Positions 10,889-27,072 of a DNA stretch of 64,000 nt are shown piece by piece. The stretch spans positions 62,001 to 126,000 of IMG/VR virus record IMGVR_UViG_3300042519_004024; one strand, given 5' to 3'. Under the pieces are notes generated by a model. The model worked only from the letters and a program-made list of their open reading frames with translations. It was not told the DNA's origin and did not search any database. A program made the translations under genes and the position numbers. The stretch's first letter is position 1; every line of letters begins with the position of its first letter.

Positions 10889-10963
10889 TCATACCATCTC
10901 CTTATAGGAACGATCCTCAGCTATCACCAATCCGCCTAATAATATGATATGTAAATTTTTCAT
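10889..10963 (-). CDS. Putative 24-aa leader peptide
   Basis: Hand translation MKNLHIILLGGLVIAEDRSYKEMV; late motif at 10986-10992; 3' end complementary to terminator 5' arm. Confidence 0.55.
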   Translation of the reverse strand: MKNLHIILLGGLVIAEDRSYKEMV

Positions 10964-11022
10964 TTGCGTTTTTATTTGTTTTGTTATAAATATATGATAC
11001 TTTTTAAAAGTGTCAAGTTTTT

Positions 11023-11346: not shown

Positions 11347-11355
11347 AATAATCTA

Positions 11356-11868
11356 TTAATATCCATGTTTTTTTGGGTACATTATATGTTCTAAATGAGA
11401 AGTATATTCAAAAGTTAAAACATCAAGTACGTCATTAATTCCATTTTTCATTTTTGAATCCTCTTCAAGTGAGTTATATTCATTTTCATAATAACTTATT
11501 AATTCTTCAAAAAGTTTTCCAATCATATTAATATTTGTTTTCCACAACGTCTTCCATTCTTCTTTTTCGTATTGTGAAAGTTCGTCATATTCAATTTCAT
11601 CATTAAATCTTTTTGATGGTCTTCTAGTGAATTTAGACATGTTTCTTTTTCTCCATAAATCATAATCGTGTTGAATGTCTCCATAACGTAAATAATTTCC
11701 TGGGATATTTTTTTCTATAAGGTAATTATTAAACAAATCTATTAACTCCGTTTTAAATTTTTCAATTTCTTCAGGTGTGATTACTTTATAAATTTCAGAT
11801 ATATTATTTTCTTTAATTACTCGTCTAACAATTCTCGCTAGATCGGATTCTGTAAGTCTATTTCTCAT
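11356..11868 (-). CDS. LTESDL-leader family protein
   Basis: MRNRLTESDLARIVRRVIKEN. Confidence 0.85.
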   Translation of the reverse strand: MRNRLTESDLARIVRRVIKENNISEIYKVITPEEIEKFKTELIDLFNNYLIEKNIPGNYLRYGDIQHDYDLWRKRNMSKFTRRPSKRFNDEIEYDELSQYEKEEWKTLWKTNINMIGKLFEELISYYENEYNSLEEDSKMKNGINDVLDVLTFEYTSHLEHIMYPKKHGY

Positions 11869-11882
11869 TTTTATATTTTTTA

Positions 11883-12497
11883 TTATGCATATTCTTCATC
11901 GTCAAAGTCCTCATACTCATCAAATGGGTCCTCACGCCTTTTTGTTATTATCGTCCCTTCACCATCTATTTTACCACCAGTCCCGAATACGTCTTTTGGT
12001 AATTTTCTATACTTTTCAGGTTTATAATCTTCAGGATATCTTTTTTTTTGTATAAAGTCATCCCAACCTTCACCTAATTCTTCATCTCTTCCTTTTGTTT
12101 TTGCAAATGCTTTTTTCAAATCATTAACTGAGTGTCCTCCAATCGCATCGTATGGTTCGTCCTCATCAACTTTATAGAAACCTTCTTTTTCCATTAAGTA
12201 TTCAATATCGTTAGGCAAATCACCATAACCTTCATCACGTAAAGCCATAACAATATCAAATTCACTCATCAAATTAAGGTCGTGTATATCATATTCACAT
12301 TCATTTTCAAGTATATCTCTTGCCTGTTCAATTAAATCTTGAAGTCTTTCCTCACCTCTATCGGTTTGTCCCCACTCTTCATCATCACTATAGTATGGAT
12401 CATACATACTTCTATCTTTATAGTCGTCGTTTTCTTTAATTACCCGTCTAACAATTCTTGCTAAATCTGATTCTGTTAGTCTTATTATTCTTTTCAT
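11883..12497 (-). CDS. LTESDL-leader family protein, acidic
   Basis: MKRIIRLTESDLARIVRRVIKEN. Confidence 0.85.
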   Translation of the reverse strand: MKRIIRLTESDLARIVRRVIKENDDYKDRSMYDPYYSDDEEWGQTDRGEERLQDLIEQARDILENECEYDIHDLNLMSEFDIVMALRDEGYGDLPNDIEYLMEKEGFYKVDEDEPYDAIGGHSVNDLKKAFAKTKGRDEELGEGWDDFIQKKRYPEDYKPEKYRKLPKDVFGTGGKIDGEGTIITKRREDPFDEYEDFDDEEYA

Positions 12498-12499
12498 TA

Positions 12500-13033
12500 T
12501 TATCTGTTGTTTCTACTTTTATCGGACTTTCCGTAATGGTGTCCTGATTGGTATTTATCATAACCTTTTCTTTTAAACCAAGCGGCGTCTCTAAGAGTAT
12601 TACTCGCTAAAGCATAAACGCCTAAAGCAGCAGCAATTCCCCCACTTATAAACATCGCTGCCGGAACAATTGCTAATGCCGCACCAACTGAACTATAGCC
12701 AATAATTTTATCAATAATACTTCTTATTTCATATTCATTATCACCCATTTCATTTTCATCCTCTTCCGTCAATACAGACTCCAAAGAATCTTTAACTATT
12801 GATTGTAAAGATTCAATACCGTTACTTTCTATAAAATCACGTAACATATCTTGCTCTTCAGGACTCAATTGTTCTGTAGCCTCTTTACTACTTTGTTCCA
12901 ATTCCATTTTTGAAAAATCGACATCCGATTCCATATCTTCAGATTGTGAAATCCATTCTTCTTCGTTTTCTTTAATCACTCGTCTAACAATTCTTGCTAG
13001 ATCAGATTCTGTAAGTCTTATAATTTTTTTCAT
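12500..13033 (-). CDS. LTESDL-leader family protein with hydrophobic hairpin
   Basis: MKKIIRLTESDLARIVRRVIKEN; hydrophobic SSVGAALAIVPAAMFISGGIAAALGVYALA. Confidence 0.85.
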   Translation of the reverse strand: MKKIIRLTESDLARIVRRVIKENEEEWISQSEDMESDVDFSKMELEQSSKEATEQLSPEEQDMLRDFIESNGIESLQSIVKDSLESVLTEEDENEMGDNEYEIRSIIDKIIGYSSVGAALAIVPAAMFISGGIAAALGVYALASNTLRDAAWFKRKGYDKYQSGHHYGKSDKSRNNR

Positions 13034-13063
13034 TATTTTTTTATTTATAAATACTTTGTTATT

Positions 13064-14020
13064 TTAAAAACCAAAGTTTAATCTTAAATCGTCTAATTTA
13101 ATTACCTCGGTAACTTCAACAAAATTATCTTCCATACCAACACTATCTCTTCTATCCTCCATTGTCATCTCATCATCTTCAATATATCTTACATGAATTT
13201 CAAGATTAAATGGAACAATTTCTTCATTTGATTCAATTTCATTAAAATCTTCCACTGAAAAATATTTACCTTCGTATTGACTGAACCCATCTCCAATCAT
13301 TATGTTGAAACTTTTTCTTATATTATACCTGTAATCGTCAGTTTCAACTTCTCCATTTCCATCACAATTACTACAAGTACTTGATCCATACCCATCACAC
13401 CATCCACATTCTTCATCTCCAGCACCTTCACATGATGGACATTCAAAATTACCTGTCCCACCACAATCACTACATCTATCTTCACCGGTTCCATCACAAT
13501 GAACACACTCTACCTCCACTTCAACCTCATCACCTTCATCATCTTCTTCAGTATCGGTTTCACTTCCTCTACCATCACAATAACGACATTCTTCATTACC
13601 TGATCCATCACAAGTATCACAATCTATAGTTGTTTCTCCATCACAACTACGACATTCTCGTCTACCTGACCCATCACAGTGTTCACATTGTTCATCACCT
13701 GAACCGTAACAGTAATCACATTCATTTTTAATTACTTCAGTGTCTTCATACAATTCAATAACTGCAACGTATAGGTTCATTATTATTCCTTCCATTGCAA
13801 CAGGATCCATTTTTCTATTTAAAATAAAATATGTCATAACACATACTTTAATTCTTTCTTGTGTGGAATTGACTTTTGATAATAATAATTCGGCTAAATG
13901 ATCACTTTTTATGATATTTATTATTTTTGAAATACCGATAAATACGTTTCCGTATTCGGTTTTCATTAAATTAGCTAAATTATTAGCTATTGAGTATAAT
14001 TTTTTAAATTCAGGTGACAT
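13064..14020 (-). CDS. Protein with ten CxxCxGxG zinc-finger repeats
   Basis: Ten motifs at 11-aa spacing, 5+5 around an acidic loop; no J domain. Confidence 0.85.
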   Translation of the reverse strand: MSPEFKKLYSIANNLANLMKTEYGNVFIGISKIINIIKSDHLAELLLSKVNSTQERIKVCVMTYFILNRKMDPVAMEGIIMNLYVAVIELYEDTEVIKNECDYCYGSGDEQCEHCDGSGRRECRSCDGETTIDCDTCDGSGNEECRYCDGRGSETDTEEDDEGDEVEVEVECVHCDGTGEDRCSDCGGTGNFECPSCEGAGDEECGWCDGYGSSTCSNCDGNGEVETDDYRYNIRKSFNIMIGDGFSQYEGKYFSVEDFNEIESNEEIVPFNLEIHVRYIEDDEMTMEDRRDSVGMEDNFVEVTEVIKLDDLRLNFGF

Positions 14021-14054
14021 ATAGTATAAATATTAAAATACTATAAAATGTACA

Positions 14055-14372
14055 CTATATTAATTTAATAAGGTCCGTTGGGTAAACTTTTTTTAGTTGG
14101 ATGTCGTATGTTTTTATAAACCAATCTAAAAGTAGGCTATCGGTTTCATAATCAAAAAATGACTTTAATTCATTATATAATTTTAAAGGACAATTTAAAT
14201 CGTCTCCGTAACCAATATGATTAAAATAAAAAAACACAAATTGTTTTTTGTTTTTTGTGTCAACTAAATAAAAGGCAATGAAATCTCCATCACATTTGTG
14301 AAGTAGTTTGAGTTTATTTAACTCAGGTAAAAACATATTAATATAATCTGAAAAAGACTTCTCTAAACTCAT
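14055..14372 (-). CDS. Hypothetical protein
   Basis: ATG 14372 overlaps upstream TGA (ATGA). Confidence 0.65.
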   Translation of the reverse strand: MSLEKSFSDYINMFLPELNKLKLLHKCDGDFIAFYLVDTKNKKQFVFFYFNHIGYGDDLNCPLKLYNELKSFFDYETDSLLLDWFIKTYDIQLKKVYPTDLIKLI

Positions 14373-14674
14373 AACTCTTGTACTTGAATCATAATCCAAT
14401 CAACTTCACCTTCAGTTAGGTTACCAAGTACGTCTTCAGTTATATGAGTATTGTATGTAATTTCCCATTCATTTTCATTTCCATGCAGCACGGCAACTTC
14501 CCATTCATTTTCATCTGAAGTATATGACGCATACCTAAACCCTTTTTCAGATATAGGACTTGGTATTTTAAACCTTACAACAGATAATCCATATCCATTA
14601 GGAAAAAATATTAATCCGTGTTGCCCATCAAATGTTGGGTGTGGTTTAAATACAATATCCTTAAATGATTTCAT
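14369..14674 (-). CDS. Hypothetical phage protein
   Basis: ORF track; TAATG coupling to upstream small ORF. Confidence 0.75.
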   Translation of the reverse strand: MKSFKDIVFKPHPTFDGQHGLIFFPNGYGLSVVRFKIPSPISEKGFRYASYTSDENEWEVAVLHGNENEWEITYNTHITEDVLGNLTEGEVDWIMIQVQEL

Positions 14675-14826
14675 TACGCGAAAGTTTTTTTATGTTTTGT
14701 TTTTCTAGTATAAAGGTTTTTTGGTTTTTCAACACGAGCAACAAATCTACCATCAAAAAATCCCGCATCTAATTGATCTTTTCTGATTTGAGTTCTTTTT
14801 ACTTTATGTTGATCGTACGTCTTCAT
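14674..14826 (-). CDS. ArfA-like ribosome-rescue factor candidate, 50 aa
   Basis: Hand translation MKTYDQHKVKRTQIRKDQLDAGFFDGRFVARVEKPKNLYTRKTKHKKTFA; promoter 14842-14872; TAATG coupling. Not in ORF track. Confidence 0.55.
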   Translation of the reverse strand: MKTYDQHKVKRTQIRKDQLDAGFFDGRFVARVEKPKNLYTRKTKHKKTFA

Positions 14827-14841
14827 CTCATTTATTTTTTA

Positions 14842-14872
14842 CAAAGATATAAATATTTTATTATATACCAAA
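14842..14872 (-). promoter_or_regulatory. Bacteroidota-type promoter
   Basis: TTTG-N19-TATCTTTG. Confidence 0.8.
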
Positions 14873-14879
14873 TTTTTTG

Positions 14880-14953
14880 TACCTCCGGCAGGACTCGAAC
14901 CTGCAAAATTCACTTTCTAAGAGTGACGTGTATACCTATTCCACCACGAAGGC
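14880..14953 (-). tRNA. tRNA-Leu(TAG) with short variable loop
   Basis: TCACT-CTTAGAA-AGTGA, A73; variable region only ATTTT. Confidence 0.88.
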
Positions 14954-14964
14954 ATTTATTTATG

Positions 14965-15036
14965 AGCTCAGGGAGGGATTCGAACCCACATACTACGGTT
15001 TTGCAGACCGAGACTTTACCAATCAGACACCTGAGC
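14965..15036 (-). tRNA. tRNA-Cys(GCA)
   Basis: TCGGT-CTGCAAA-ACCGT, U73. Confidence 0.9.
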
Positions 15037-15038
15037 AA

Positions 15039-15494
15039 TTAACGGCAGTGATGGTCTGCCGCTCTTGTTGCAATTTGATTGTCAGGTTTAATATTTGCTT
15101 TATAACCTAACGACGTTGCCCACCCAACAACGGGTTGTACAAGTTTTGAACTAAAGTGTTTTTCTTCACAGTTATAATCCAAATCTATTTCAACCTTAAC
15201 TTTTACTTTTTGAGTTAACCATTCGGCAACCTCGATTGAATAATCAGCTTCATTCCAAAGACGTGTCCATTTGTCTTTTATTTTTTTCACTTTTTGTTTG
15301 TGTAGGATGTAGTGAACACCTCTGTTTCCGTATCTGTATGCTATCACTGTAACATATACGGTACTTCTTCTATGGTTTTGTGAATCCGTTCCAATATGTA
15401 TTTCAGCCCATGGACATTCCTTTAAAACATCTAAGGTGTGTTTTACCACATCAGGGATTGCTTCACCATTAATTGTTCTAAATACTCTGTTCAT
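15039..15494 (-). CDS. RNase H-like YkuK-family protein
   Basis: IHIGTDSQ, RLWNEAD, EIDLDYN, ATRAAD acidic motifs. Confidence 0.85.
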   Translation of the reverse strand: MNRVFRTINGEAIPDVVKHTLDVLKECPWAEIHIGTDSQNHRRSTVYVTVIAYRYGNRGVHYILHKQKVKKIKDKWTRLWNEADYSIEVAEWLTQKVKVKVEIDLDYNCEEKHFSSKLVQPVVGWATSLGYKANIKPDNQIATRAADHHCR

Positions 15495-15505
15495 TATTTC
15501 TACTT

Positions 15506-15643
15506 TTATTTACTTATCAAAAAATAAGTAATAAGAATTTGAGCAATCACGGCAATTATTCTTGCTATTGTTCTTGCTAATGTCATTCGATTTTTCCAAC
15601 CTTCCAACCTTTCTTCAAATGTTGGTTTAACATTTTCATCCAT
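15506..15643 (-). CDS. Small membrane protein, 45 aa
   Basis: MDENVKPTFEERLEGWKNRMTLARTIARIIAVIAQILITYFLISK; start moved to ATG 15643 to avoid tRNA-Phe. Confidence 0.6.
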   Translation of the reverse strand: MDENVKPTFEERLEGWKNRMTLARTIARIIAVIAQILITYFLISK

Positions 15644-15656
15644 ACTATTTTTTTTG

Positions 15657-15732
15657 TGGAACCATAGGGAGTCGAACCCTAACCTCTGGATTTTCAGTCC
15701 AGCGTGACACACCACACTTACACCATAGTTCC
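15657..15732 (-). tRNA. tRNA-Phe(GAA)
   Basis: CTGGA-CTGAAAA-TCCAG. Confidence 0.92.
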
Positions 15733-16227
15733 TTATTTAACTTCAAATGCAAATTTAATCACACGTTTCTTTTTTACCGCATCATCCCAATTACCAATAA
15801 CAACACCATCTTTAATTGTGAATGCGTGTCTTGAAACAAGGATGAAGAATGTCCCAACAGGATTTTGTTTTGCAAAAGTACCAACAGTCATTTCTCGTTT
15901 AGTTACAACACCCTTAGTTTTAACTTCGTACTTTAAACTGTACATCCCCATAGTACTTTTAGTACCCATACATTTAACTTTCTTGTAGTTAATCTGTCTT
16001 CTATCTTCGGCGATTTGTTTCATTTTTAAAACAGTACCATAAGTCCCCTCACGATCTTTACGTCCAAAGTTCTCTTTAACATATTTGTGAGCGTAGTCAT
16101 ATGAAACCCCAAATGAAGATGCAAATGCTCTAACAACACAATCATTCTTCTCTCCTCTTGCGATAGGTGATTCAGCATACCCCTTAATCGCTTCTTTCGT
16201 CGTACAATATGGTAATCCTTCTTTCAT
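15733..16227 (-). CDS. Conserved phage protein, possible Cys-His peptidase-like fold
   Basis: EKNDCVVRAFA and SRHAFTIKDG; ATG 16227. Confidence 0.65.
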   Translation of the reverse strand: MKEGLPYCTTKEAIKGYAESPIARGEKNDCVVRAFASSFGVSYDYAHKYVKENFGRKDREGTYGTVLKMKQIAEDRRQINYKKVKCMGTKSTMGMYSLKYEVKTKGVVTKREMTVGTFAKQNPVGTFFILVSRHAFTIKDGVVIGNWDDAVKKKRVIKFAFEVK

Positions 16228-16274
16228 ACTGTAAAGATACAAAAACTTTTTTAATTGGCAAAATTAAAAATTAG

Positions 16275-16345
16275 CGCGCCCCCAAGGTTTCGAACCCTGA
16301 CCGATGGGTTTGGAATCCATCATGCTACCATTACACCAGAGACGC
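16275..16345 (-). tRNA. tRNA-Trp(CCA)
   Basis: Loop TTCCAAA, G73. Confidence 0.9.
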
Positions 16346-16382
16346 AAGTTGTCCGACCTAGCTCGGAACCGACATCGGATTG

Positions 16383-16455
16383 TACCCCCTCAGAGATTCG
16401 AACTCCGACCTGACACCTTAGAAGAGTGTTGTACTTCCAATTATACGAAAGGGGC
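16383..16455 (-). tRNA. tRNA-Arg(TCT)
   Basis: ACACT-CTTCTAA-GGTGT. Confidence 0.92.
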
Positions 16456-16460
16456 AAATA

Positions 16461-16631
16461 AAAGATGATGAATGACTTTATCAGGAATCCCGCTACTTCT
16501 ATCAAAGCTTCACACACCATTAGAGAGTTGGGTTGTTACATCAATACAATTAAGATTGAATACCTATCCTTAGTTTGTACCCTTGCGACACGTCTCTCCA
16601 CGCTTATCATTCTACGCTTCTTATCATCTTT
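16461..16631 (-). ncRNA. 171-nt rod-like ncRNA candidate (6S-like shape)
   Basis: AAAGATGAT/ATCATCTTT, GAATGAT/GTCATTC, AAGC/GCTT, TGGAGAG/CTCTCTA; bounded by two tRNA-Arg genes. Confidence 0.65.
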
Positions 16632-16633
16632 TG

Positions 16634-16706
16634 TACCTTCGGCGAGATTCAAACTCACATCTTGCGGGTCGTAACCGCAGGTTCTATTCTATTTAACTAC
16701 GAAGGT
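16634..16706 (-). tRNA. tRNA-Arg(ACG), variant D and T loops
   Basis: TGCGG-TTACGAC-CCGCA; D loop lacks GG; T loop TTTGAAT. Confidence 0.85.
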
Positions 16707-16710
16707 ATAA

Positions 16711-16802
16711 ATAGTTCTGGTCAACCACTCGCCACCCACCTCAGGGAATAAAGGGAATACCACCCTATACTTTGAGCCTAAGCCTTGTCCGTTGTGAACT
16801 AT
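16711..16802 (-). ncRNA. 92-nt structured ncRNA candidate
   Basis: ATAGTTC/GAACTAT closing stem, CAAC/GTTG, CTCA/TGAG, AGGG/CCCT; between His and Arg tRNAs. Confidence 0.5.
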
Positions 16803-16805
16803 TTG

Positions 16806-16879
16806 TGTGTATGATGGGGGTCGAACCCATGACCTCTTGAACCACAATCAAGCACTCTACCAACTGAGCTACATACACC
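16806..16879 (-). tRNA. tRNA-His(GTG)
   Basis: CTTGA-TTGTGGT-TCAAG; encoded G-1 opposite A73. Confidence 0.92.
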
Positions 16880-16884
16880 ATATT

Positions 16885-16954
16885 GTCCCGTGTAATGGTA
16901 TCGAACCACTCTAAAGTCGGATATGAGCCAACTTTGATCCCTGATCACACGGGA
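16885..16954 (-). tRNA. Non-canonical CAT tRNA with 8-bp acceptor and 8-bp anticodon stems (elongator Met candidate)
   Basis: TCCCGTGT/ACACGGGA; mini D arm ATC-AGG-GAT; AAAGTTGG-CTCATAT-CCGACTTT; T arm AGTGG-TTCGATA-CCATT. Confidence 0.7.
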
Positions 16955-16958
16955 GTTG

Positions 16959-17047
16959 AGGAAAACAGTGGTAACGATCCACAATCGGTTTCTCACCGAT
17001 CACATTGTTTAGCAAACAAGTCCCGTCGCCTTCAGGGATTACTTTCC
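16959..17047 (-). tRNA. tRNA-Ser(GCT)
   Basis: Loop TTGCTAA; variable arm ATCGGT/ACCGAT; T loop ATCGTTA; U73. Confidence 0.85.
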
Positions 17048-17106
17048 ATAGAGTGTGGTAGGACTGCAGTTCCTTGGGGATCCCACACTATTTATTCCCC
17101 TTTTTG

Positions 17107-17179
17107 TGTTCACGACGGGTTACGATCCCATTACCTCCGACGTATCAGATCGGCGCTCTACCAATTGAGCTACGTGAAC
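17107..17179 (-). tRNA. tRNA-Ile(GAT)
   Basis: CCGAT-CTGATAC-GTCGG; T loop ATCGTAA. Confidence 0.92.
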
Positions 17180-17185
17180 TTATCG

Positions 17186-17258
17186 CGGACAAGGAAGGGT
17201 ACGATCCTACAACCTATCGGTTAACAGCCGATTGCTCTACCAATTGAGCTACTTGTCC
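17186..17258 (-). tRNA. tRNA-Asn(GTT)
   Basis: ATCGG-CTGTTAA-CCGAT, G73; T loop ATCGTAC. Confidence 0.92.
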
Positions 17259-17262
17259 ATTG

Positions 17263-17348
17263 TGGTGGGAGAGGAGGGACTCGAACCCCCAAGGTCTTTC
17301 GACGACAGATTTACAGTCTGCTGAGCCAACCAATTGCTCAACTCTCCC
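17263..17348 (-). tRNA. tRNA-Tyr(GTA)
   Basis: GCAGA-CTGTAAA-TCTGT, variable arm, encoded CCA. Confidence 0.95.
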
Positions 17349-17354
17349 AGTTTA

Positions 17355-17477
17355 GGAAAGGGGAAGATGGTTCTGTGGACATCCCCTTTTATGATTGGCG
17401 TTACTATGACAGTTAAAACTCCGACATAACCACGACTACTGACACGTTAACGTTATATCATTCCCCAATCAACCTTT
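17355..17477 (-). ncRNA. Structured ncRNA candidate between tRNA-Val and tRNA-Tyr
   Basis: TGATTGG/CCAATCA domain then AAAGGGGATG/CATCTTCCCCTTT hairpin. Confidence 0.5.
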
Positions 17478-17478
17478 G

Positions 17479-17552
17479 TACACCCTACAGGGATCGAACC
17501 TGTGACCTGTTGTATGTAAAACAACCGCTACTACCAGCTGAGCTAAAGGTGC
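17479..17552 (-). tRNA. tRNA-Val(TAC)
   Basis: GTTGT-TTTACAT-ACAAC. Confidence 0.92.
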
Positions 17553-17554
17553 GT

Positions 17555-17770
17555 TTATGATGTTATCATTTTAATACTTTCAATTGTGGTAGAGTACATT
17601 CCTTGTTCAATGTAAGGTTTACTATCTTTTAATAGTTTCAAAACAATTTCTGTTGCCTCGTTTTCGGTTTTACCTTGTTTAACCAATCTTACGATTGCTT
17701 TTTCACATTCTTCACCAACCTTAACCATTCCACTTGGAAGTCCTTTTTTAATCTTCTCTACTTTTTTCAT
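17555..17770 (-). CDS. Hypothetical early protein
   Basis: 71 aa directly after promoter TTTG-N19-TATCTTTG (17775-17805). Confidence 0.7.
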   Translation of the reverse strand: MKKVEKIKKGLPSGMVKVGEECEKAIVRLVKQGKTENEATEIVLKLLKDSKPYIEQGMYSTTIESIKMITS

Positions 17771-17813
17771 AGTACAAAGATAATACTTTTTTTTAATCTA
17801 CCAAATTTTTTTG

Positions 17814-17888
17814 TGATCCCGGTGAGGCTCGAACTCACGACCCCTCCATTAAAAGTGGAGTGCTCTAAACCAACTGAGCTACGAGATC
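17814..17888 (-). tRNA. tRNA-Lys(TTT)
   Basis: CTCCA-CTTTTAA-TGGAG. Confidence 0.95.
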
Positions 17889-17948
17889 TTCTGTTTGTCA
17901 TTCTTGTCACTTTCCATGTTACTTGTTTTTAATTGTTTATTTATTTAG

Positions 17949-18022
17949 TCTAAGTGGCAGGGATCGAACCTGCGGCCTGATGCTCCCAAAGCACCCGCTC
18001 TTCCAAACTGAGCTACACCTAG
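17949..18022 (-). tRNA. tRNA-Pro(TGG)
   Basis: GGTGC-TTTGGGA-GCATC; C1:G72. Confidence 0.95.
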
Positions 18023-18028
18023 TTATTG

Positions 18029-18117
18029 TGGAGGAAGAAGTAGGTGTCGATCCCAATACCCGCAAAGGTACCGCCCGTTTTCAAGACGGGGTCACAAGCC
18101 GTTGTGATTCATCTTCC
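18029..18117 (-). tRNA. tRNA-Ser(TGA)
   Basis: CCCGT-CTTGAAA-ACGGG; variable arm; T loop ATCGACA; U73; encoded CCA. Confidence 0.87.
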
Positions 18118-18123
18118 TTATTG

Positions 18124-18195
18124 TTGTTCCCCAAGGGTTCGAACCTCGATTCCATGGACCAAAACCATGTGTCCTGCCGATTAGACGAGGGAACA
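18124..18195 (-). tRNA. tRNA-Gln(TTG)
   Basis: CATGG-TTTTGGT-CCATG. Confidence 0.93.
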
Positions 18196-18238
18196 TTAAT
18201 GAAGCCAATATGTCAAAGAACTTTTTCTTTTTTGTTTG

Positions 18239-18311
18239 AGGTTCCTATCAGGTTCGAACTGATGACTCCGGGTTACAAAGCCGGGATATTACCAAACTAT
18301 ACTAAGGAACC
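18239..18311 (-). tRNA. tRNA-Thr(TGT)
   Basis: Loop TTTGTAA, C31xC39 mismatch, U73. Confidence 0.88.
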
Positions 18312-18324
18312 AAATTTTTGGGTA

Positions 18325-18357
18325 TAAAAAAACCCGAACTTTTTGGGTTCGGGTCTT
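18325..18357 (-). terminator. Intrinsic terminator / possible attenuator before tRNA array B
   Basis: ACCCGAACC-CAAAA-AGTTCGGGT plus T-run. Confidence 0.8.
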
Positions 18358-18388
18358 ATATTTCTTTTATATTTTTAGTTAATCTCTA

Positions 18389-18499
18389 TCAACTCATAAA
18401 TGAAAATGCCCTAACTCGCGACTTAAGCGTACGATACACATTGAACGACCACTGAATGCTCGGGTTACAAATGTTCATATGTCTATTAGTTGTTTTCAT
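18389..18499 (-). CDS. Putative 36-aa leader peptide
   Basis: Hand translation MKTTNRHMNICNPSIQWSFNVYRTLKSRVRAFSFMS; late motif 18506-18512; several GC-rich codons (TCG, CGA, AGG, ACG, CCG). Confidence 0.55.
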   Translation of the reverse strand: MKTTNRHMNICNPSIQWSFNVYRTLKSRVRAFSFMS

Positions 18500-18617
18500 C
18501 TTGTTATAAATATATCGTTATTTCTAAAAGTTTTAATTCTTATACAAATTTAGTTATTTTTTTCTATTTGAAAAGTGTTTTATTGTTTTTTTTATATTTA
18601 TTTAAAAAATATTTCTT

Positions 18618-20003
18618 GTGGTAGAAAAAAAGGCTTTAAATGAAGAATTAAAAAGAATTAAACAATTAATGGTATATGATATGAATTACCATAATTCTAA
18701 AATTTATGAGGATGTTGTCACATCTTCTAAAGTCGGTCAATGTAAAATTACCCCAAATCCAATTCAGGAAAATGAGGTTGCGATTATCTCCTTTGATAAA
18801 AACAAATCACAATTTAGAGTTGGTATGAAATTATTTTTTGGATCCGCTAAAACTGAAACTCAATTAAAAAATGGTTTTGATAAACTCATTAATTTAATTT
18901 TACAATACCCTGATCTTGATGAGGGAATAAAAAATAAAATTAAAAGTGGTGAATTTGCTTTAGGTATACCTACAGTATTAAATGTTATTGGGTCGGCAAG
19001 TAGCGTAAGGGGGGTTCCTGTTATGCCAACAATAACTAATAATAAAGCATCAACAAAAATTACATCAATTAACGTCAATTCTTTTGCGTCAAATATTAAT
19101 AGAACCGCAGATAATTACAAAACACTTAAAGATGATGAAATTAATAACGGATATGCCACAGGACGTATACAAACAATAACTGATTTTATAAAGTCAGGAA
19201 AATTAACAAAAATACAGTCAGGTATGGATGTTGAGGTTAAAAACAATGTTGCGGTTATTACCGATACGGGTGGTTGTGACGATGAGCATAGAAATACCGA
19301 CATATACCCAAATGCTGGACAATTTGCTCTTTTGGATATGTATGTCACTTTATCTAAAAAAATAATTGTCGCCACTAACCCATCAACTTGTATTAATAAG
19401 TTGACAATTAAAATTGGTTATGATAAAGATCTTGCAACTACTGAACTTCAAAAACACGAGTGTGATTTTGGAATTTTTAATGTATATGCAAATGATGTTT
19501 TTGTTAAAACTATTAATTTAAATAATTATGTTTTTGATACCGGTTTAAGAACTAGAGAAACTAATGTTGATGGATTAAAAATAACTGATTTTACTGAAGG
19601 TAGGGAATCTGATGGGTTAACTGGAGGTACTAGATTTTATACCATAACAATAAACCAAAATGATAAGTTATGGAATGATATTATGGCAAACGCACCTAAA
19701 TTTGGTAACCATATTATGTTATCATATAAAGGTTTCCCTAGCGCTTGGTACGCCGGTAAGAAGATTTACGCCCAAGGAGCTAGAAACAGTAAAACACTTG
19801 GACCAGCAAAAAAATGGGATGGTAGTGATGCAGAATCACATGCGTCAGCAGTTTATTTAGATATTACTCTTTATAGAAAAGATAAAACAAAGGACAATAT
19901 TAAAGGTTGGACAACAGCAACTGCAAGAGGTGTTCAAATGATTACAATTGCTGACTTAACACCTTGTTCAAAATCTAGTGATAAGAGAATAGTAATATCT
20001 TAA
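18618..20003 (+). CDS. Hypothetical late protein, probable virion-associated
   Basis: 461 aa; leader ALNEELKRIKQLM; TATTTAT at 18595-18601. Confidence 0.75.
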   Translation: MVEKKALNEELKRIKQLMVYDMNYHNSKIYEDVVTSSKVGQCKITPNPIQENEVAIISFDKNKSQFRVGMKLFFGSAKTETQLKNGFDKLINLILQYPDLDEGIKNKIKSGEFALGIPTVLNVIGSASSVRGVPVMPTITNNKASTKITSINVNSFASNINRTADNYKTLKDDEINNGYATGRIQTITDFIKSGKLTKIQSGMDVEVKNNVAVITDTGGCDDEHRNTDIYPNAGQFALLDMYVTLSKKIIVATNPSTCINKLTIKIGYDKDLATTELQKHECDFGIFNVYANDVFVKTINLNNYVFDTGLRTRETNVDGLKITDFTEGRESDGLTGGTRFYTITINQNDKLWNDIMANAPKFGNHIMLSYKGFPSAWYAGKKIYAQGARNSKTLGPAKKWDGSDAESHASAVYLDITLYRKDKTKDNIKGWTTATARGVQMITIADLTPCSKSSDKRIVIS

Positions 20004-20127
20004 TTTTTTTTATTACTATAATGTATTTGTTCTTCCTCTAATCTACGTAAAAAAACGTAGTATTCTTCCGATTCTATAAATTCATTGTGGATTAATTCTA
20101 ATATTTCTTCCATTACTATTGTGTTAG

Positions 20128-20201
20128 TGATCCGCTCAGGATTCGAACCTGAGACCTACTGCTTAGAAGGCAGTTGCTCTATCCAGCTGAGCTAGCGGAC
20201 C
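20128..20201 (-). tRNA. tRNA-Arg(TCT), second isolated gene
   Basis: ACTGC-CTTCTAA-GCAGT; canonical cloverleaf. Confidence 0.95.
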
Positions 20202-20777: not shown

Positions 20778-21577
20778 ACCGCCTTTGTTGTACATCCTAC
20801 TTTAATACACATCTTTATTGCTATTGAATCACAGTACTTGAAATCTTGTCCTGGACCTGGCATACAATTTACAAATTCAGGACACTTAAATACGTCTTTA
20901 CCTCCAACATTCCAATAACATTGGTTAACTTTGCCGTCTTTATTTATATAATTGTTATCAATTTTATCATCACTTTTTTTTGCGTTATTCATAATACATT
21001 CCATAAACCCTGGATAATTAGGAACCGGATTTGCAAATAAGTATTTTTGCATACAGTATTTTACTTCCTCACAATCAAATTGATTGACGTAATCTTGTTT
21101 TGTTTTTTCATCATCAACGTATCTTTCTTGATTATTATCATCATAATCATCACAATTACATTGCGGTAAATCGATACATCCTTCTTCTTCTAACGCCTTT
21201 AATGTGTTGTAACCAACTTTACCATCAACAGTCAATCCATTGTTTTTTTGGAACTCTTTAACCGCATCTCTTGTATGTTGTCTAAATTTTCCGTCACAAC
21301 TATTTTTATCTTTGGCACAACCGGTATTCATTCCTCCACCTTCATACTTAATGTTGTAACCACATTTAGATAATGCGTGTTGGATTTCTTTAACAACGTC
21401 ACCGTTTGATCCGTATGCTGCCATTTTTCGTTTACAAATAATATCACATAACTCATCACCTTCTTGTATTATACCATACTCATAAGCCTCATTAAGGTGT
21501 TGGGTTTTTGTTGCATAGGTATGCATGTTAATTATTCGTTTCTTTTCTTCTTCAGTTATAATAAAACTTTTATTCAT
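20774..21577 (-). CDS. Leader-family protein with peptidoglycan-binding domain and Cys-rich C-terminus
   Basis: MNKSFIITEEEKKRII; GSNGDVVKEIQHAL...AVKEFQKNNGLTVDGKVGYNTLKAL. Confidence 0.85.
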   Translation of the reverse strand: MNKSFIITEEEKKRIINMHTYATKTQHLNEAYEYGIIQEGDELCDIICKRKMAAYGSNGDVVKEIQHALSKCGYNIKYEGGGMNTGCAKDKNSCDGKFRQHTRDAVKEFQKNNGLTVDGKVGYNTLKALEEEGCIDLPQCNCDDYDDNNQERYVDDEKTKQDYVNQFDCEEVKYCMQKYLFANPVPNYPGFMECIMNNAKKSDDKIDNNYINKDGKVNQCYWNVGGKDVFKCPEFVNCMPGPGQDFKYCDSIAIKMCIKVGCTTKAV

Positions 21578-21588
21578 AACGTATTATA

Positions 21589-22071
21589 TTAAGCGGATTT
21601 TACAGTTTCCAAAAATCCTTCATTTATTCCTTTTAGTTGTGCAATTGCTTCAGAGTATGCCTTCATACCTTCATTTAATTTTTCCATTCTATTTTCAATA
21701 TCATCACCTCTTCTTGTCGCCCCTAATTTTTCAACTCTTTTTTCAATTTTTTCTTTATTAGCTTCGTCAAATAACGCCGCTAAATCATTTTCCATTTCTG
21801 TTAATTCATTTTGCATTGATGTTGCTCTACTTCTAACTCTTGCGTATGCCGCTTCAAGTGCCGGATTCAACTGAGTACCACCAGCAAATGTTGATCCAAG
21901 GTTTTGTCCAAATGTTTTAAATCTACTAAAAAACCCAACAGTGTTAGCCTTCAGTCTATCCCACCATCCTTCATTCATTATTTCTATTCTTTTTCTACTT
22001 TCTTGAATAAATCTTTTTTCTGTAATTTTATTCAATTCTTGCATTTGTCTAATTTTTGTGTAACTTTTCAT
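21589..22071 (-). CDS. Leader-family helical protein
   Basis: KITEKRFIQES...IMNEGWWDRLK; coiled-coil pattern. Confidence 0.75.
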   Translation of the reverse strand: MKSYTKIRQMQELNKITEKRFIQESRKRIEIMNEGWWDRLKANTVGFFSRFKTFGQNLGSTFAGGTQLNPALEAAYARVRSRATSMQNELTEMENDLAALFDEANKEKIEKRVEKLGATRRGDDIENRMEKLNEGMKAYSEAIAQLKGINEGFLETVKSA

Positions 22072-22096
22072 TTTTTTATTTTTTATTTTTTATTTA

Positions 22097-22465
22097 TTAC
22101 CATGTTCTGCAAGCCCAATATCTTGGTTTCCATCTTGGTCCAGGATTATCACAATTATGTCTCGCTCTAAATGAACGTCTCCTCTCAGGATTGTTCTTTT
22201 TAATCACCATTCGTTTTCCTTTTGCGGATTTTCCACCAAACCCAAAATTCACTTTAACAACTTTACCTTTATCGTTTTTAACATATACCTTGAACTTTTT
22301 GATGTCTCCTTGCATAATCTTACCAAGTTGAACTTTTCTTCCTTGGTATTCGGCTTCATTTAAAAAATCAATGTTTTCTACTGTTCCGTAAACGTCCTCA
22401 TAAATTACAGTATTTCTTTTAAGTTCTTCGGAAATTACTTTTTTTATAATATCATTAATATTCAT
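22097..22465 (-). CDS. Leader plus basic DUF6321-like domain
   Basis: MNINDIIKKVISEE; KKFKVYVKN...VKVNFG...NPERRRSFRARHNC...RYWACRTW. Confidence 0.7.
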   Translation of the reverse strand: MNINDIIKKVISEELKRNTVIYEDVYGTVENIDFLNEAEYQGRKVQLGKIMQGDIKKFKVYVKNDKGKVVKVNFGFGGKSAKGKRMVIKKNNPERRRSFRARHNCDNPGPRWKPRYWACRTW

Positions 22466-22487
22466 ACAAATAAATATCACATTAATA

Positions 22488-22514
22488 AAAAAAAGGTGAG
22501 TGTTACCTCACCTT
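22488..22514 (-). terminator. Intrinsic terminator
   Basis: AAGGTGAG-GTAACA-CTCACCTT plus T-run. Confidence 0.8.
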
Positions 22515-22579
22515 ATTTTGGGTCGTCCACGGATTGTGAACCAACTACCACCACTTTGTTTTAAAGAGAAACAAAGAAA

Positions 22580-22846
22580 CTACCCCTCTAACTTGGATTT
22601 TGCCACAACTACTTCAGCCATTGAAACTTCTTTTGCTAAGCCAATAACCATACATTCTTTCAACATATTGGATGGTATATGAATTAAAAAATCCTTCCCG
22701 TTGAATGTTGTAAGGTTTTCACCTAATTCAATTGATACGTGTACCATTTTCAAAAATAATTTGAATTGTACTTCGTCCATAAATGTCTCATTCAATACTT
22801 CCCCGTATTTAGGGTGAACAATCGTTACATGTTTTAGTGTTGCCAT
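22580..22846 (-). CDS. Hypothetical early protein
   Basis: Promoter TTTG-N19-TACATTTG at 22861-22891. Confidence 0.75.
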   Translation of the reverse strand: MATLKHVTIVHPKYGEVLNETFMDEVQFKLFLKMVHVSIELGENLTTFNGKDFLIHIPSNMLKECMVIGLAKEVSMAEVVVAKSKLEG

Positions 22847-22886
22847 ATCTTTTATTTATACAAATGTAATACTTTTTTTTTAATTA

Positions 22887-23303
22887 TCAAATTTCTGTGT
22901 ACTGAATTTTTGAAATTACAATACTTGAATTTCTATCCTCAATTCCGAAGTATTTTAGCTCATTTAACATAGCACCTAAAATACCTCTTCTGTACCAACT
23001 GTTATATCTTTTAGCGTATCGTTGACAGTAACGGTTAGATTGGTAAAAATGCCCCACCTCTGTTCTCATATCAACAATAACGTCAATCTCATAAACGTAC
23101 TGATCTTGGTTATCAGACCACTGAGTTCTTCTGTGTTTATATTTTCTAATGGATTTGATTTTGAAAACAGAATTTCTTAAGTCCGAATCCACATGGTAAC
23201 CATCATTTTGTTGTGGTTTGATTTCCATATTTTTAGTTAATTTTTTAACCACCTTGATGTGGTTATCTGATATCGCTCTTCCTGTTTTGTCGTTGTTTTC
23301 CAT
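22887..23303 (-). CDS. Hypothetical early protein
   Basis: Promoter TTTG-N19-TATCTTTG at 23308-23338. Confidence 0.75.
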   Translation of the reverse strand: MENNDKTGRAISDNHIKVVKKLTKNMEIKPQQNDGYHVDSDLRNSVFKIKSIRKYKHRRTQWSDNQDQYVYEIDVIVDMRTEVGHFYQSNRYCQRYAKRYNSWYRRGILGAMLNELKYFGIEDRNSSIVISKIQYTEI

Positions 23304-23399
23304 ACATCAAAGATAAGCAAAAAAAATTAATGCACAAAAAAATGGATACAAATATTATCTGCATCCATCAATTTTTTTACTTATAAGATTTTAAACCTA

Positions 23400-24335
23400 A
23401 AAAAGAACGCTGAGATTACACGTTTATGTGAGAATCTTTTGAAGGATTATTTTTTCCCTTCGTATCCACCATCTTTTGAATGGTACTTCTCAGTGACGAT
23501 TATTTAGGTGAATCACTCCTTGAGGTATCAATTACTCTCTCATTACTCAACTCTCTTCGAGGATGCCTCCCCAACTAATCCTTGCGGGATTAGAGGTTTT
23601 TGGTAAGAATGTAGTTCAACTTGCGGTATCACTACGCAACGAACGGCTCGTTACTATGTAGTCACCTTTCATTGACACCTGACGGACACTTTTGCTTTAT
23701 AGTTCTTAATTTTACTTAATTAGCTGTAAAGTTTTTTGTGTCGTGGATTGATCGAAGTAGTGGTCCGTCTTTCAGCTTCGTTATCTTTTGAACAACGAAA
23801 TACCAAACTACTCCGTGAAATGTCCCCATTTCCATATTTCAAGATTACTTCGAGATTTAACCTTTGGTAAGGTTCAATCAAGGACAATGTCAGCACCACC
23901 TGTTTGTTGTCATACCTTTCGGTTTTAAGTATCCTATCATAATGGAACACGCAATAATAAAATCGGATAATCTTATTTTTTGCACTATTCCTACGGGTTA
24001 TTCCTATTGGTGTTCCCACCTCAAACTGACAACCCACATTGCCAGTTCGTCTAACCACTTTCCCTACAGCGTTGCCCTCGGTACTAAAGGTTATACGGTA
24101 TCCCGCTTGTGTACTCGATCTCGACAAGTCCGAAGACTCACCAAGACGCAAACCCAACACACTTAAGGGTTCACTTTATCCTACTTTCGTAGTTTATTTT
24201 AATGGACCATACACGGCCCAATGACTTAATTTAGTTTCACACTTAAAGAAAGGGAGGTGTTAATTCTCTTCTTTTATTTTGTGACGACTGTTTCAGTCGG
24301 ATTTAGATTTTCAAAGAACGTTTCAGGACTTTTCC
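23400..24335 (-). ncRNA. Large ornate ncRNA candidate, GOLLD-like (~940 nt)
   Basis: GC-elevated, no credible CDS; hairpins GTC-TTCG-GAC, CTAC-GAAA-GTAG, CTAATCCC-GCAA-GGATTAG, ACC-GAAA-GGT; AGTA/GAA motifs; TAACTTTG promoter 24348-24355. Confidence 0.7.
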
Positions 24336-24396
24336 TGATTTGTTTTACAAAGTTAAGTCTTTTTTTTTGATTAGACAAGTACTTTGTGAACTTTTT

Positions 24397-24540
24397 TTAA
24401 AATTTTTCTACGTACACTTTTTCGGTTCCGTATTTAATCGACATTAAATGTGCAAATTCCAAATTTGGTGTTACCACTTTTTGTCCTTTGTCGTTAACGT
24501 AGGAGTAAATTTCATTTTCTTTAATTGTTTCTTCTGACAT
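24397..24540 (-). CDS. Small hypothetical protein, 47 aa
   Basis: Hand translation MSEETIKENEIYSYVNDKGQKVVTPNLEFAHLMSIKYGTEKVYVEKF. Confidence 0.55.
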   Translation of the reverse strand: MSEETIKENEIYSYVNDKGQKVVTPNLEFAHLMSIKYGTEKVYVEKF

Positions 24541-24709
24541 TTTAAAAAACTTTTTATTATTATTAATGACTTTTGATAATCTTAATGATATTAATTTGTT
24601 TTGTCAAATGTTTAAAGAAAAAAAATGAATTTTTTACGGAAGTATATATAAATATATCATTCAATACCAAAAAACACATTTTTTAAATTTTTTTTGAATA
24701 TTTATTAGT

Positions 24710-25063
24710 ATGAAATTATTAATTAATGATAACCTATTTAGATGTAAGGTTTGTAACACACCTGAATCGATTACAAAGGGTATGATGAAAAGGAGATTCG
24801 AAGGTTTTGATTGTATGGTTTTTTTAATGCCGGAAAAAAAGAACCAAGAATTTTGGATGTATGATTGTTTAATACCTTTAGATATTGTTATGGTTAATGA
24901 TAATATTATAGAAACCATTAATTCAAATTGTCCTCCATGTAAAGACACATCATCTTGTGAATATTATAATGGTTTCGGGAATGTTGTTTTAGAATTTGAA
25001 GGTGGTACCTGTAACACTTTAGGTATTAAATCAGGTGACAAGATAAAAATTGGGTTGAGTTAA
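24710..25063 (+). CDS. DUF192-family protein
   Basis: TPESITKGMM, MVFL, FWMYDCLIPLDIV, VLEFEGG. Confidence 0.85.
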   Translation: MKLLINDNLFRCKVCNTPESITKGMMKRRFEGFDCMVFLMPEKKNQEFWMYDCLIPLDIVMVNDNIIETINSNCPPCKDTSSCEYYNGFGNVVLEFEGGTCNTLGIKSGDKIKIGLS

Positions 25064-26571
25064 CCGTTTTTTATTTTACTATTTAATATTTCAACAAACT
25101 TATCTCTTATGTCTTTTGTTAGTTCTGTCGTTCCTCTTCCTTGTTTTGGATTTGCAAGTGATTCAACATCAATACCTTCTCTCTTCATTCCACTAATAGC
25201 CGCTTGAATTTGTTTTTCAGAAAGTTTTCTAAACCTTAAAAGTTTTTGTTTTATATCTTGTATGAATGTATTTGGTCCTTCATAAAATGCAATTGGTATA
25301 GCTTCTGCCGGTAAGTCTTTGGTGTATGGTTTATCGTAACCACTATAAACAAAACCAATACCCGAAATAGTTGTTATACACTTATGTCCACCAGCATTTG
25401 CAACCAAATAGTCATATGCACTTATTGTATTTGTTTCAGGATTATAAGAAGGCATTTCCCCATAAATTGCGTCCATATCTTTTTGTGTAAACCCAACAGA
25501 ATCTTTTGTTGCCTTTTTTTCAGAAACTTTTTTAATTATCTTATAAGGTAAAATTACTTGTTCAAGTTCAGGTTTGAAACTTAAGAGTACCTCGTCTTTT
25601 ATTTTTCCTAAATCAACCCCTTTTAGTTCCCTATCCGCTTTATAAGGATTACAAGATGCTTGAACCAAACCTACAGGTGCTCCAAGCCCTGTCACTAAAA
25701 AGTCAGCATCAGGGTTTAAGTCAAATGGTGTATATCTATCATATGAACCCTTTTTCATTGATCCTAAACCAAATTGGTATAGTACTCCGCCTTCTTTTTG
25801 GATTACCCCTTCTTTTGATCTATCTTCAAGATATTTTTCTTGGTTTTTTTGCATCGTCTCTACTGAAGCATATCCTTGATCTTTTGCAATTTTTGTTATT
25901 GTATTATATAAATTTTCTAATGATGGTTCGCACTTCATTACTAGGTATTCAAGTAAATCTCTACCATCAACCTTATCATTTTTATAAGCCAAAAGTAGTT
26001 TATTTACAACAAGCCCCATCATCATTTTATTTCTTCTAACACTTTGATCCTTATCGTATTTAAAAATAAAATTCATTACCATTTTTGTTGTAATCTGATT
26101 TGTGGCAAAATTTGCAGAATCAATTGTTGATACGACATATAAATCTTCATCTTTAAATAAATCTTTTGGTGAAATTGTTTGAGAAATTGTTTCAACATTT
26201 GATCTTGAGTGTTTGAAACTGGTTTTTGTATCTTTTTCAACACCAACTTGTGAGTCGTGGTGATCAGTATGAATTTCAAACATTGGTTTTCCGTGTGCAA
26301 AATCAACAAGAACAGGCATAATTTCTCCACTTCCATCCGGTTTTTTAACTGCCCATTCTTTTTCACCGTATTGGATTATTTCGCAATCAACAACTTTAAA
26401 CCCTTGGTTTTCAAGGTACTTTTTCATTGCAATTGCAGTTGTAACTCCATCCAAATCTTGATGAAAGTATATTTTTGCTTTCTTGTACCTTTTAAGAAGT
26501 TCATTTATATCTCTAATACCTGACTCTTTAATAAGTTGTTTTAATTGACTTTCAGTTATAATAATTTTCAT
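25060..26571 (-). CDS. DHH-family phosphoesterase with leader peptide
   Basis: MKIIITESQLKQLIKES; YFHQDLDG, VDFAH, TDHH motifs; NAGGHK. Confidence 0.85.
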   Translation of the reverse strand: MKIIITESQLKQLIKESGIRDINELLKRYKKAKIYFHQDLDGVTTAIAMKKYLENQGFKVVDCEIIQYGEKEWAVKKPDGSGEIMPVLVDFAHGKPMFEIHTDHHDSQVGVEKDTKTSFKHSRSNVETISQTISPKDLFKDEDLYVVSTIDSANFATNQITTKMVMNFIFKYDKDQSVRRNKMMMGLVVNKLLLAYKNDKVDGRDLLEYLVMKCEPSLENLYNTITKIAKDQGYASVETMQKNQEKYLEDRSKEGVIQKEGGVLYQFGLGSMKKGSYDRYTPFDLNPDADFLVTGLGAPVGLVQASCNPYKADRELKGVDLGKIKDEVLLSFKPELEQVILPYKIIKKVSEKKATKDSVGFTQKDMDAIYGEMPSYNPETNTISAYDYLVANAGGHKCITTISGIGFVYSGYDKPYTKDLPAEAIPIAFYEGPNTFIQDIKQKLLRFRKLSEKQIQAAISGMKREGIDVESLANPKQGRGTTELTKDIRDKFVEILNSKIKNG

Positions 26572-26594
26572 ATTAATAAATACCCATTAAAATA

Positions 26595-26620
26595 AAAAAC
26601 CCACTATAATGGTGGGTTTT
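26595..26620. terminator. Bidirectional-type terminator
   Basis: A-run, CCCAC-TATAATG-GTGGG, T-run. Confidence 0.7.
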
Positions 26621-26697
26621 GTTTTGTTTGTTTTAAATTTAATTTTAAGTAAAATAATATTTTTTCTTATTTTTTGTTTTTTAAGTTTAAATAAATA

Positions 26698-27072
26698 TTA
26701 ATTACGGTAGGCATAAAAACCAAACCTAAATCCCTGAGCGGTTAAATCTTTAACTTTTTGTACTAAATTGTCAAATCCTACAATATTATATTTACCAACT
26801 AGCATCATTAATTCATTTAAAAATTCAGCATCAGTTTCATTACCTTGTCCAGAGCTCACAAGTTCTGAATTATAACTAGGTGCTCCTTTTCTTATTTCAC
26901 CATATGTTTTTCCAACAGAAGCCATTTCATCATCACTATTTGGTGTAAAATCAGATGACGAATCTTTTGGTCTACCATATCCGGTATTGTTACCCTCTTC
27001 CTCAGTTTCTTTAATGATTTGTCTAACAATATGTGATAAATCTCTTTCTGTTAATTTTACAATTCTTTTCAT
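26698..27072 (-). CDS. LTESDL-leader family protein
   Basis: MKRIVKLTERDLSHIVRQIIKET. Confidence 0.85.
   Translation of the reverse strand: MKRIVKLTERDLSHIVRQIIKETEEEGNNTGYGRPKDSSSDFTPNSDDEMASVGKTYGEIRKGAPSYNSELVSSGQGNETDAEFLNELMMLVGKYNIVGFDNLVQKVKDLTAQGFRFGFYAYRN

Follow-up and report, generated by a model that had tools for sequence, protein, structure and literature searches.

The window analyzed here is a 64,000-nt stretch of an IMG/VR virus record of 213,924 bp that CheckV places at ~71% completeness. Its minus strand carries a large structured RNA of the GOLLD family, directly upstream of whose promoter lies a conserved open reading frame of 47 aa (Table 1). Genes in the neighborhood encode a PG-binding lysin-like protein, a DNA methyltransferase, DUF192 and DUF3310 proteins, an SbcC-like protein and a virion protein. 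An array of 24-26 tRNA genes occupies positions 8388-20201 of the strand that carries the RNA, and the GOLLD unit lies 3.2 kb ahead of this array in the direction of transcription. The record is labeled as a provirus, yet its GC content is even along its length (0.28-0.36 per 10 kb), with nothing that looks like a host flank. The phage genes and the tRNA array agree with the initial annotation of this DNA, which had placed the RNA in a phage and noted that GOLLD RNAs occur near tRNA genes. Within the array, ARAGORN reports two tRNAs with irregular anticodon loops (8388-8461 and 8944-9029, minus strand; 'tRNA-???', anticodon tt), both of which Rfam scores as tRNA (47.7 and 46.8 bits), and Rfam alone matches a tRNA at 10015-10089 (minus strand, 39.6 bits) for which there is no ARAGORN call.

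Table 1. Features of the GOLLD locus, in coordinates of the window
Feature	Position	Strand	Remarks
Conserved 47-aa ORF	24397..24540	minus	directly upstream of the GOLLD promoter
Promoter, Bacteroidota sigma-A type	24348..24378	minus	TTG 24378-24376, 20-nt spacer, TAACTTTG 24355-24348
Leader hairpin UCAGG-AAAAG-UCCUGA	24323..24338	minus	stem CAGG/CCUG vs CGG/CCG among relatives
Leader motif AACGUUCUUUGAAAA	24308..24322	minus	GUUCUU core invariant in 21 clade members, remainder nearly so
Hypervariable leader insert	24222..24307	minus	at least four unrelated sequence types at the same position in relatives
Hairpin CGACUG-AAA-CAGUCG	24299-24285	minus	inside hypervariable leader insert
C/U-rich tract	24261-24243	minus	inside hypervariable leader insert
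GOLLD 5' domain core	23816..24221	minus	406 nt (393-416 nt in relatives)
GAAA hairpin CUAC-GAAA-GUAG	24192-24181	minus	read from sequence
UUCG hairpin GAGUC-UUCG-GACUU	24139-24126	minus	read from sequence
GOLLD 3' domain	23407..23815	minus	whole RF02032 model, 409 nt (406-421 nt in relatives)
A/U-rich variable linker	~23757-23693	minus	within 3' domain; 61-78 nt, sequence varies
Hairpin CUAAUCC-CGCAAG-GAUUAG	23593-23575	minus	read from sequence
Observed RNA 3' end	23410..23411	minus	contigs from two independent studies run straight into Illumina adapter sequence here
Intrinsic-terminator-like hairpin	23335..23369	minus	13 pairs (23369-23341) and T run

With respect to the host, the pattern TTG-N17-21-TAnnTTTG, which we take to be the -33/-7 consensus of primary-sigma promoters in Bacteroidota, was counted 16 times on the coding (minus) strand of the window against an expectation of 5.3+-2.4, and a Shine-Dalgarno-like 4-mer precedes only one of 43 minus-strand genes. 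From this promoter type and the near-absence of Shine-Dalgarno motifs we infer that the host is likely a member of the Bacteroidota; of the Bacteroidota phage named in the initial annotation, the phage is confirmed, and the host is well supported by inference. A tblastn search with two large proteins yielded remote or no matches to cultured phages, a protein atlas returned viral clusters only, and the provirus flanks of the record contain no visible host DNA.

A full-length, two-domain GOLLD RNA

The RNA coincides with the island of elevated GC content that had first drawn attention to this region: in 200-nt windows, GC is 0.36-0.46 over 23400-24299, compared with 0.17-0.35 in the 600 nt that flank it at either end, the value for the whole window being 0.311 and neighboring coding regions reaching 0.375. 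The minus strand of the RNA (934 nt) folds at -255.3 kcal/mol (z -4.74), compared with -221.3 kcal/mol (z -2.47) for the plus strand. The three hairpins picked out in the initial annotation (24126-24139, 24181-24193, and 23575-23593) are all present on the minus strand, and the further hairpin that it placed downstream, near 23343-23368, is the terminator-like structure of Table 1.

In the window, this region also contains an uninterrupted ORF of 146 aa with a GTG start (23720-24160, minus strand), and an open frame of this length could be taken to mean that the region codes for a protein and that the RNA structure is incidental. This ORF belongs to no Pfam family, and its frame is interrupted by 1-13 stops or a frameshift in all 20 of the relatives compared, while compensatory changes keep the base pairing intact. 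We therefore reject the protein-coding interpretation, to which we assign practically no probability, in line with the initial remark that the overlapping ORFs lack a phage-like composition.

The identity of the RNA emerges from a scan of the whole window against Rfam, in which the GOLLD model (RF02032) matches positions 23815-23407 of the minus strand with 329.1 bits, more than twice the gathering score of 150, and an E-value of 1.5e-93. The match spans model positions 1-416 of 416, with just four non-canonical pairs flagged, and is the sole non-tRNA match in the window. When the segment 23300-24450 was rescanned with permissive filters, ROOL, OLE, group I and group II introns and all other families gave no match at E<=1, so that among the covariance models suggested at the outset GOLLD alone matches. 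Automatic Rfam annotation by itself would have named this RNA GOLLD. No tRNA was found inside the linker of the 3' domain (~23757-23693), a segment that is disordered within the GOLLD cage and in some members contains a tRNA.

RF02032 models only the conserved 3' domain of GOLLD together with the linker, and accordingly the ~530 nt from 23816 to ~24345 needed a separate test. Relatives were drawn from IMG/VR by a scan for two invariant words of the 3' domain, which returned 35 viral contigs, every one of which also contains the 5' part, at 73-93% identity; the window was then aligned with 20 full-length, non-identical relatives (21 sequences). For this alignment RNAalifold predicts 226 pairs, 93 of which are preserved by changes on both sides. 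The 5' core, with ~13-16 helices including two conserved GAAA loops and two multistem junctions, accounts for 112 predicted pairs, of which 57 have compensatory double changes, and 97.9% of cells are paired; when the partners are slid by 1-3 columns, only 4-14 double changes and 34-43% paired cells remain. The corresponding figures for the 3' domain are 100 pairs, 32 with compensatory double changes, and 98.7% of cells paired, against 4-13 double changes and 43-51% paired cells in the slid control. The 5' part is a conserved structured RNA domain whose support within this clade is no weaker than that of the 3' domain, and the RNA is under purifying selection for structure. A search of the 21 sequences for non-nested covarying helices (pseudoknots with at least four consecutive pairs, at least two of them covarying) found none, at the low power imposed by many invariant loop and linker columns. 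The 35 sequenced relatives constitute a ready covariation data set for the poorly modeled GOLLD 5' domain.

Given that positions 23816-24342 match no family, Rfam modeling just the 3' half, that blastn against phage GenBank records matched the 3' domain alone, and that the first 77-132 nt are hypervariable, the RNA might be regarded as a new giant class, as the initial annotation had allowed, or as a chimera in which a GOLLD 3' domain is joined to an unrelated, clade-specific 5' RNA of ~525 nt. A profile of the 5' core largely refutes both notions. In nhmmer searches, this profile gives collinear matches in two distant phage lineages, each lying directly upstream of a GOLLD 3' domain: in LR745206 (locus L040; E 4.5e-48) and in Acinetobacter phage Herod (E 4e-4), where the match extends across the whole profile. 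The collinear matches in two distant lineages indicate that this is the canonical GOLLD 5' domain and that no foreign RNA has been joined on. Moreover, a leader hairpin followed by GUUCUUUGAAA is common to L040 as well, the core (393-416 nt in the clade) equals in size the 420-nt 5' region of the env-38 GOLLD (PMC12286853), and a variable 5' domain belongs to the definition of GOLLD, whose 5' domains are structured regions of ~300-450 nt with less conservation than the 3' domain. We consider a new class or a chimera extremely improbable; the RNA is an ordinary full-length, two-domain member of the known GOLLD family, as the initial annotation had proposed in the first place, and both the Rfam score and the covarying 5' domain with its homologs in other GOLLDs support this. 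The locus leaves the definition of GOLLD unchanged and adds a new member from a well-populated clade of freshwater phages.

GOLLD RNAs are among the largest structured RNAs of bacteria or phages. The structures of two have been solved, namely that of env-38, an 833-nt RNA from a marine metagenome that forms a 14-mer cage of D7 symmetry (PDB 9MEE) and whose residues 1-420 make up a separate, less conserved 5' domain (PMC12286853), and that of a 700-nt RNA from Streptococcus agalactiae that forms a 12-mer (PDB 9L0R; PMC12990946). Neither needs protein to assemble into a closed cage, and nanomolar concentrations suffice (PMC12286853, PMC12990946). The RNA described here resembles env-38 in the size of both parts (a 5' region of ~420 nt compared with a core of 406 nt, and a 3' part of ~413 nt compared with 409 nt), in the variable inter-domain linker, in the presence of both P21-region hairpins (as modeled by Rfam), in the GAAA loops of the 5' domain and in the phage and tRNA context. 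It differs in the 119-nt leader (hairpin, near-invariant motif and hypervariable insert) that is added before the core, and in having its own promoter, whereas env-38 lies just downstream of a tRNA. With the S. agalactiae GOLLD it shares the family and the conserved 3' domain, but that RNA has no P9, P11a-c or P21b, and its 5' domain is smaller (PMC12990946). Being ~230 nt longer and matching the Rfam 3' model in full, the present RNA is closer to env-38 than to the S. agalactiae RNA.

The distant homologs detected with the 5' core profile differ in their arrangement. The copy in the uncultured 635-kb huge phage LR745206 (L040; Rfam GOLLD, 287 bits) and that of the Acinetobacter phage Herod/AM24 group (L039; 225 bits) both have a homologous 5' core and sit within tRNA arrays, wedged amid tRNA genes that leave room for at most ~945 nt and ~781 nt, respectively; they are presumably freed by tRNA processing. 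Unlike these, the GOLLD of the window stands alone, with a promoter and a terminator. ROOL and OLE are other large, ornate, homo-oligomeric RNAs, and ROOL, too, is a cage-forming RNA known from phages, where it lies close to tRNAs; neither ROOL (RF03087) nor OLE shows any match in sequence or structure to the present RNA at E<=1.

Boundaries and abundance of the transcript

The promoter TTG-N20-TAACTTTG, already recognized as the RNA's own in the initial annotation, is kept across the aligned relatives, and transcription is predicted to start in the TAAAACAAA that follows it, at ~24344-24340 (near 24342). It belongs to an extended promoter class, cTTGaca, ~19 nt, TA(A/T)CTTTGTAA(A/G)ACAAA, of which each relative locus (L006-L036) contains 2-5 copies, also in front of other genes. 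Another promoter of this kind on the minus strand of L012, near 9409, is followed by AACGUUCUUUGA, which resembles the GOLLD leader motif, hinting at a 5' leader element that may be shared.

From the predicted start to the end of the Rfam match, the RNA would be ~934 nt long (879-964 nt in the clade), comprising a leader of 119 nt (77-132 nt in relatives) and ~815 nt of 5' core and 3' domain. The excess over the 833-nt reference thus derives from the variable leader, so that the description of the RNA as longer than typical holds only marginally, the two structured domains together being close in length to the reference and another GOLLD possibly reaching 945 nt. The leader motif AACGUUCUUUGAAAA occurs once in the window, and in the distant L040 a hairpin of different sequence takes the equivalent leader position, with GUUCUUUGAAA retained after it. 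The terminator-like hairpin lies ~40 nt past the mature 3' end, and the relatives have a hairpin of different sequence in the same place.

Within the leader insert, AACACCUCCCUUUCUUUAAG (24243-24262, minus strand) is similar to the anti-Shine-Dalgarno region at the 3' end of 16S rRNA. Of the 21 aligned sequences, only those of the window, L005 and L020 have the CACCUCC version, and another group has CCCCCC at this place, which argues against a conserved anti-Shine-Dalgarno mimic.

By sampled-word indexing, six metatranscriptomes and numerous DNA runs from freshwater were found to contain the stretch, and contigs from four RNA runs from freshwater or rivers (X10, X16, X17, and X18) were placed on 21500-27000. 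In these four metatranscriptomes, where depth is that of assembled contigs without direction, summed over relatives of at least 90% identity in runs chosen for holding the sequence, the word depth is 199-28,137 across 23340-24259, compared with 0-10.5 on the 1.8-kb downstream flank and 0-2, save for one spot, on the 2 kb upstream beyond 24628. For contigs of X10 that are identical to the window, the depth is 316 at 23411-23844 and 2.7-4.2 at 22693-23185. This contrast with the flanks rules out carry-over of DNA as the source. Hence the RNA over at least 23410-24288 is ~100 to more than 1000 times commoner than the neighboring genes in environmental RNA; it is a discrete, abundant non-coding transcript, whose strand and 5' end we infer. 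In natural waters such as lakes and rivers, then, this GOLLD RNA, with its defined 3' end, vastly outnumbers the transcripts of neighboring phage genes. In X10 only, a depth of 102 was also seen at 26652-26835, covering the 3' end of an ORF on the minus strand (26698-27072) and adjoining intergenic sequence, with values near 0 in the neighboring bins.

The observed 3' end, a fragment end in heavy use, falls 3-4 nt short of the point where the Rfam model stops and precedes the terminator hairpin by ~40 nt; we read it as a mature end generated by trimming. Toward the 5' end, contigs that match exactly extend to 24268-24288, and the depth in 24260-24443 is 3-78; the first ~55-75 nt of the leader, with the promoter-proximal hairpin and the conserved motif, may be removed, or strain variation in the hypervariable insert may break the assemblies. 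The conserved RNA runs from ~24342 to 23407-23410, and thus the initial extent of 23400-24355 captured a real RNA within slightly wider bounds. In the scenario that we consider probable, the host RNA polymerase would start at ~24342 and terminate at the hairpin 23369-23341, and the 3' trailer would be trimmed back to the last GOLLD helix.

The downstream genes are on the same strand, and the next start codon follows the end of the GOLLD RNA after only ~100 nt; this arrangement could suggest a long structured 5' leader or cis-regulator of those genes (the first ORF starting at 23303), as opposed to a free-standing RNA. Between the two, however, lie the terminator-like hairpin and a separate TTG/TAnnTTTG promoter (23337-23308), the RNA depth drops by a factor of ~100 or more at 23410, the point at which contigs run into adapter, and the downstream genes vary, with an ORF of 138 aa in six loci and an opposite-strand tmRNA in others. 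A cis-regulatory leader is therefore highly improbable, and the locus appears to be an independent transcription unit, well delimited by promoter, leader, two domains and terminator. Taken together, we hold it to be very likely that the window carries, on its minus strand, a full-length, expressed GOLLD gene and that this gene belongs to an uncultured phage (214-kb record), probably a jumbo phage with a freshwater host from the Bacteroidota.

The upstream gene, predicted cage assembly and a possible link to translation

The 47-aa ORF has intact homologs of 47-52 aa (40-55% identity) in the same place and on the same strand in 27 of the 29 relatives for which upstream DNA is available, and it stays while other GOLLD neighbors vary. 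It is a single-copy gene in the genome and belongs to no Pfam or PHROG family; an AF2 model of the protein adopts a beta-beta-alpha-beta topology (pLDDT 75), for which no fold match was found in the PDB. Its family comprises ~104 cluster representatives in a large protein library. Divergent members adjoin GOLLD together with SmpB and tmRNA (L049/L050), a tRNA array (L048) or a tmRNA (L052), and family members also lie beside tRNA or tmRNA genes where there is no GOLLD, from which it follows that the ORF tracks the translation-RNA island and not GOLLD alone. The ORF was not found in the distant GOLLD loci or in L025, and these absences, together with its occurrence without GOLLD, weaken the idea of a GOLLD-specific partner. 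That the strain-specific leader insert or the 47-aa gene is a functional module of the GOLLD system as opposed to a passenger we consider very improbable; if this were so, a small protein binding the RNA would be the first protein partner of any GOLLD, and an insert decorating or addressing the cage would tie cage RNAs to the capture of ribosomes or mRNA.

As for the assembly of the RNA, by homology to the two solved GOLLDs it can be predicted that the 3' domains would form a ring, capped by the 5' domains, and that the copies, linked by kissing loops and A-minor contacts, would make up a closed, hollow, protein-free dihedral cage with the linker facing inward. By this analogy, a cage of some stoichiometry is somewhat more probable than the failure to form one. 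Between 12 and 14 copies would be expected, and 14, as in env-38, is the more likely number since both P21-region hairpins are present and the 5' core is of env-38 size. The loop AGGCA (23568-23564), with an invariant GC dinucleotide, is a candidate symmetric kissing loop, mapped through the Rfam model only, and is consistent with the symmetric kissing loop reported for L21a.

In several relatives, the GOLLD 3' end is closely followed by a phage tmRNA gene on the opposite strand (L010:13561-13958, L014:8787-9186, L015:7805-8203, L030:1947-2348, L021:8352-8942, and L049:2476-3371), and L049 also encodes SmpB; no tmRNA was found in the record from which the window comes. In L021, a group I intron match (94.7 bits) overlaps the tmRNA match, which is weak there. 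Since the GOLLD unit heads an island of 24-26 tRNA genes and adjoins phage tmRNA and SmpB genes in relatives, we tentatively hypothesize that GOLLD acts on the translation apparatus during lytic growth, perhaps keeping tRNAs, ribosomes or related factors sequestered or protected. This is guilt by association and, as such, our best guess, with a chance of being right that we put at roughly one in three. The recurrent linkage to tRNA arrays, tmRNA and SmpB makes the translation machinery a more sharply defined candidate target of GOLLD cages.

Conceivably, GOLLD could instead be an anti-defense decoy or sponge directed, for example, at host nucleases or RNA-sensing immunity, or a monomeric or protein-bound RNA with a catalytic or regulatory activity. 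No biological role has yet been established for GOLLD (PMC12286853), the very high abundance would suit a sponge, and a conserved small ORF travels with the RNA. Against these possibilities, two independent GOLLDs form nanomolar, protein-free closed cages (PMC12286853, PMC12990946), the linkage with tRNA, tmRNA and SmpB recurs, and the small ORF is missing from distant GOLLD loci and present in places without GOLLD. Thus, we consider such functions unlikely and favor, with the reservation expressed above, an action of the cage on translation.

With respect to the wider distribution of the family, the exact GOLLD word pattern occurred in only two records in one scan of a collection of species-representative genomes. 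These two, the MAG contigs L037 (CAZDRR010000001.1) and L038 (JAMCRC010000018.1), are labeled Saccharibacteria and Patescibacteria, a point against the likely Bacteroidota host. The former contains at least 17 tRNA genes, a match to the abiF RNA and part of a GOLLD 3' domain that scores below threshold (nhmmer E 1e-7, profile positions 108-405), and may be a mis-binned phage contig or carry a divergent GOLLD. Among the tRNA genes of a relative, a 'freshwater-1' RNA (RF02979, 87.7 bits) is found at L010:3348-3409.
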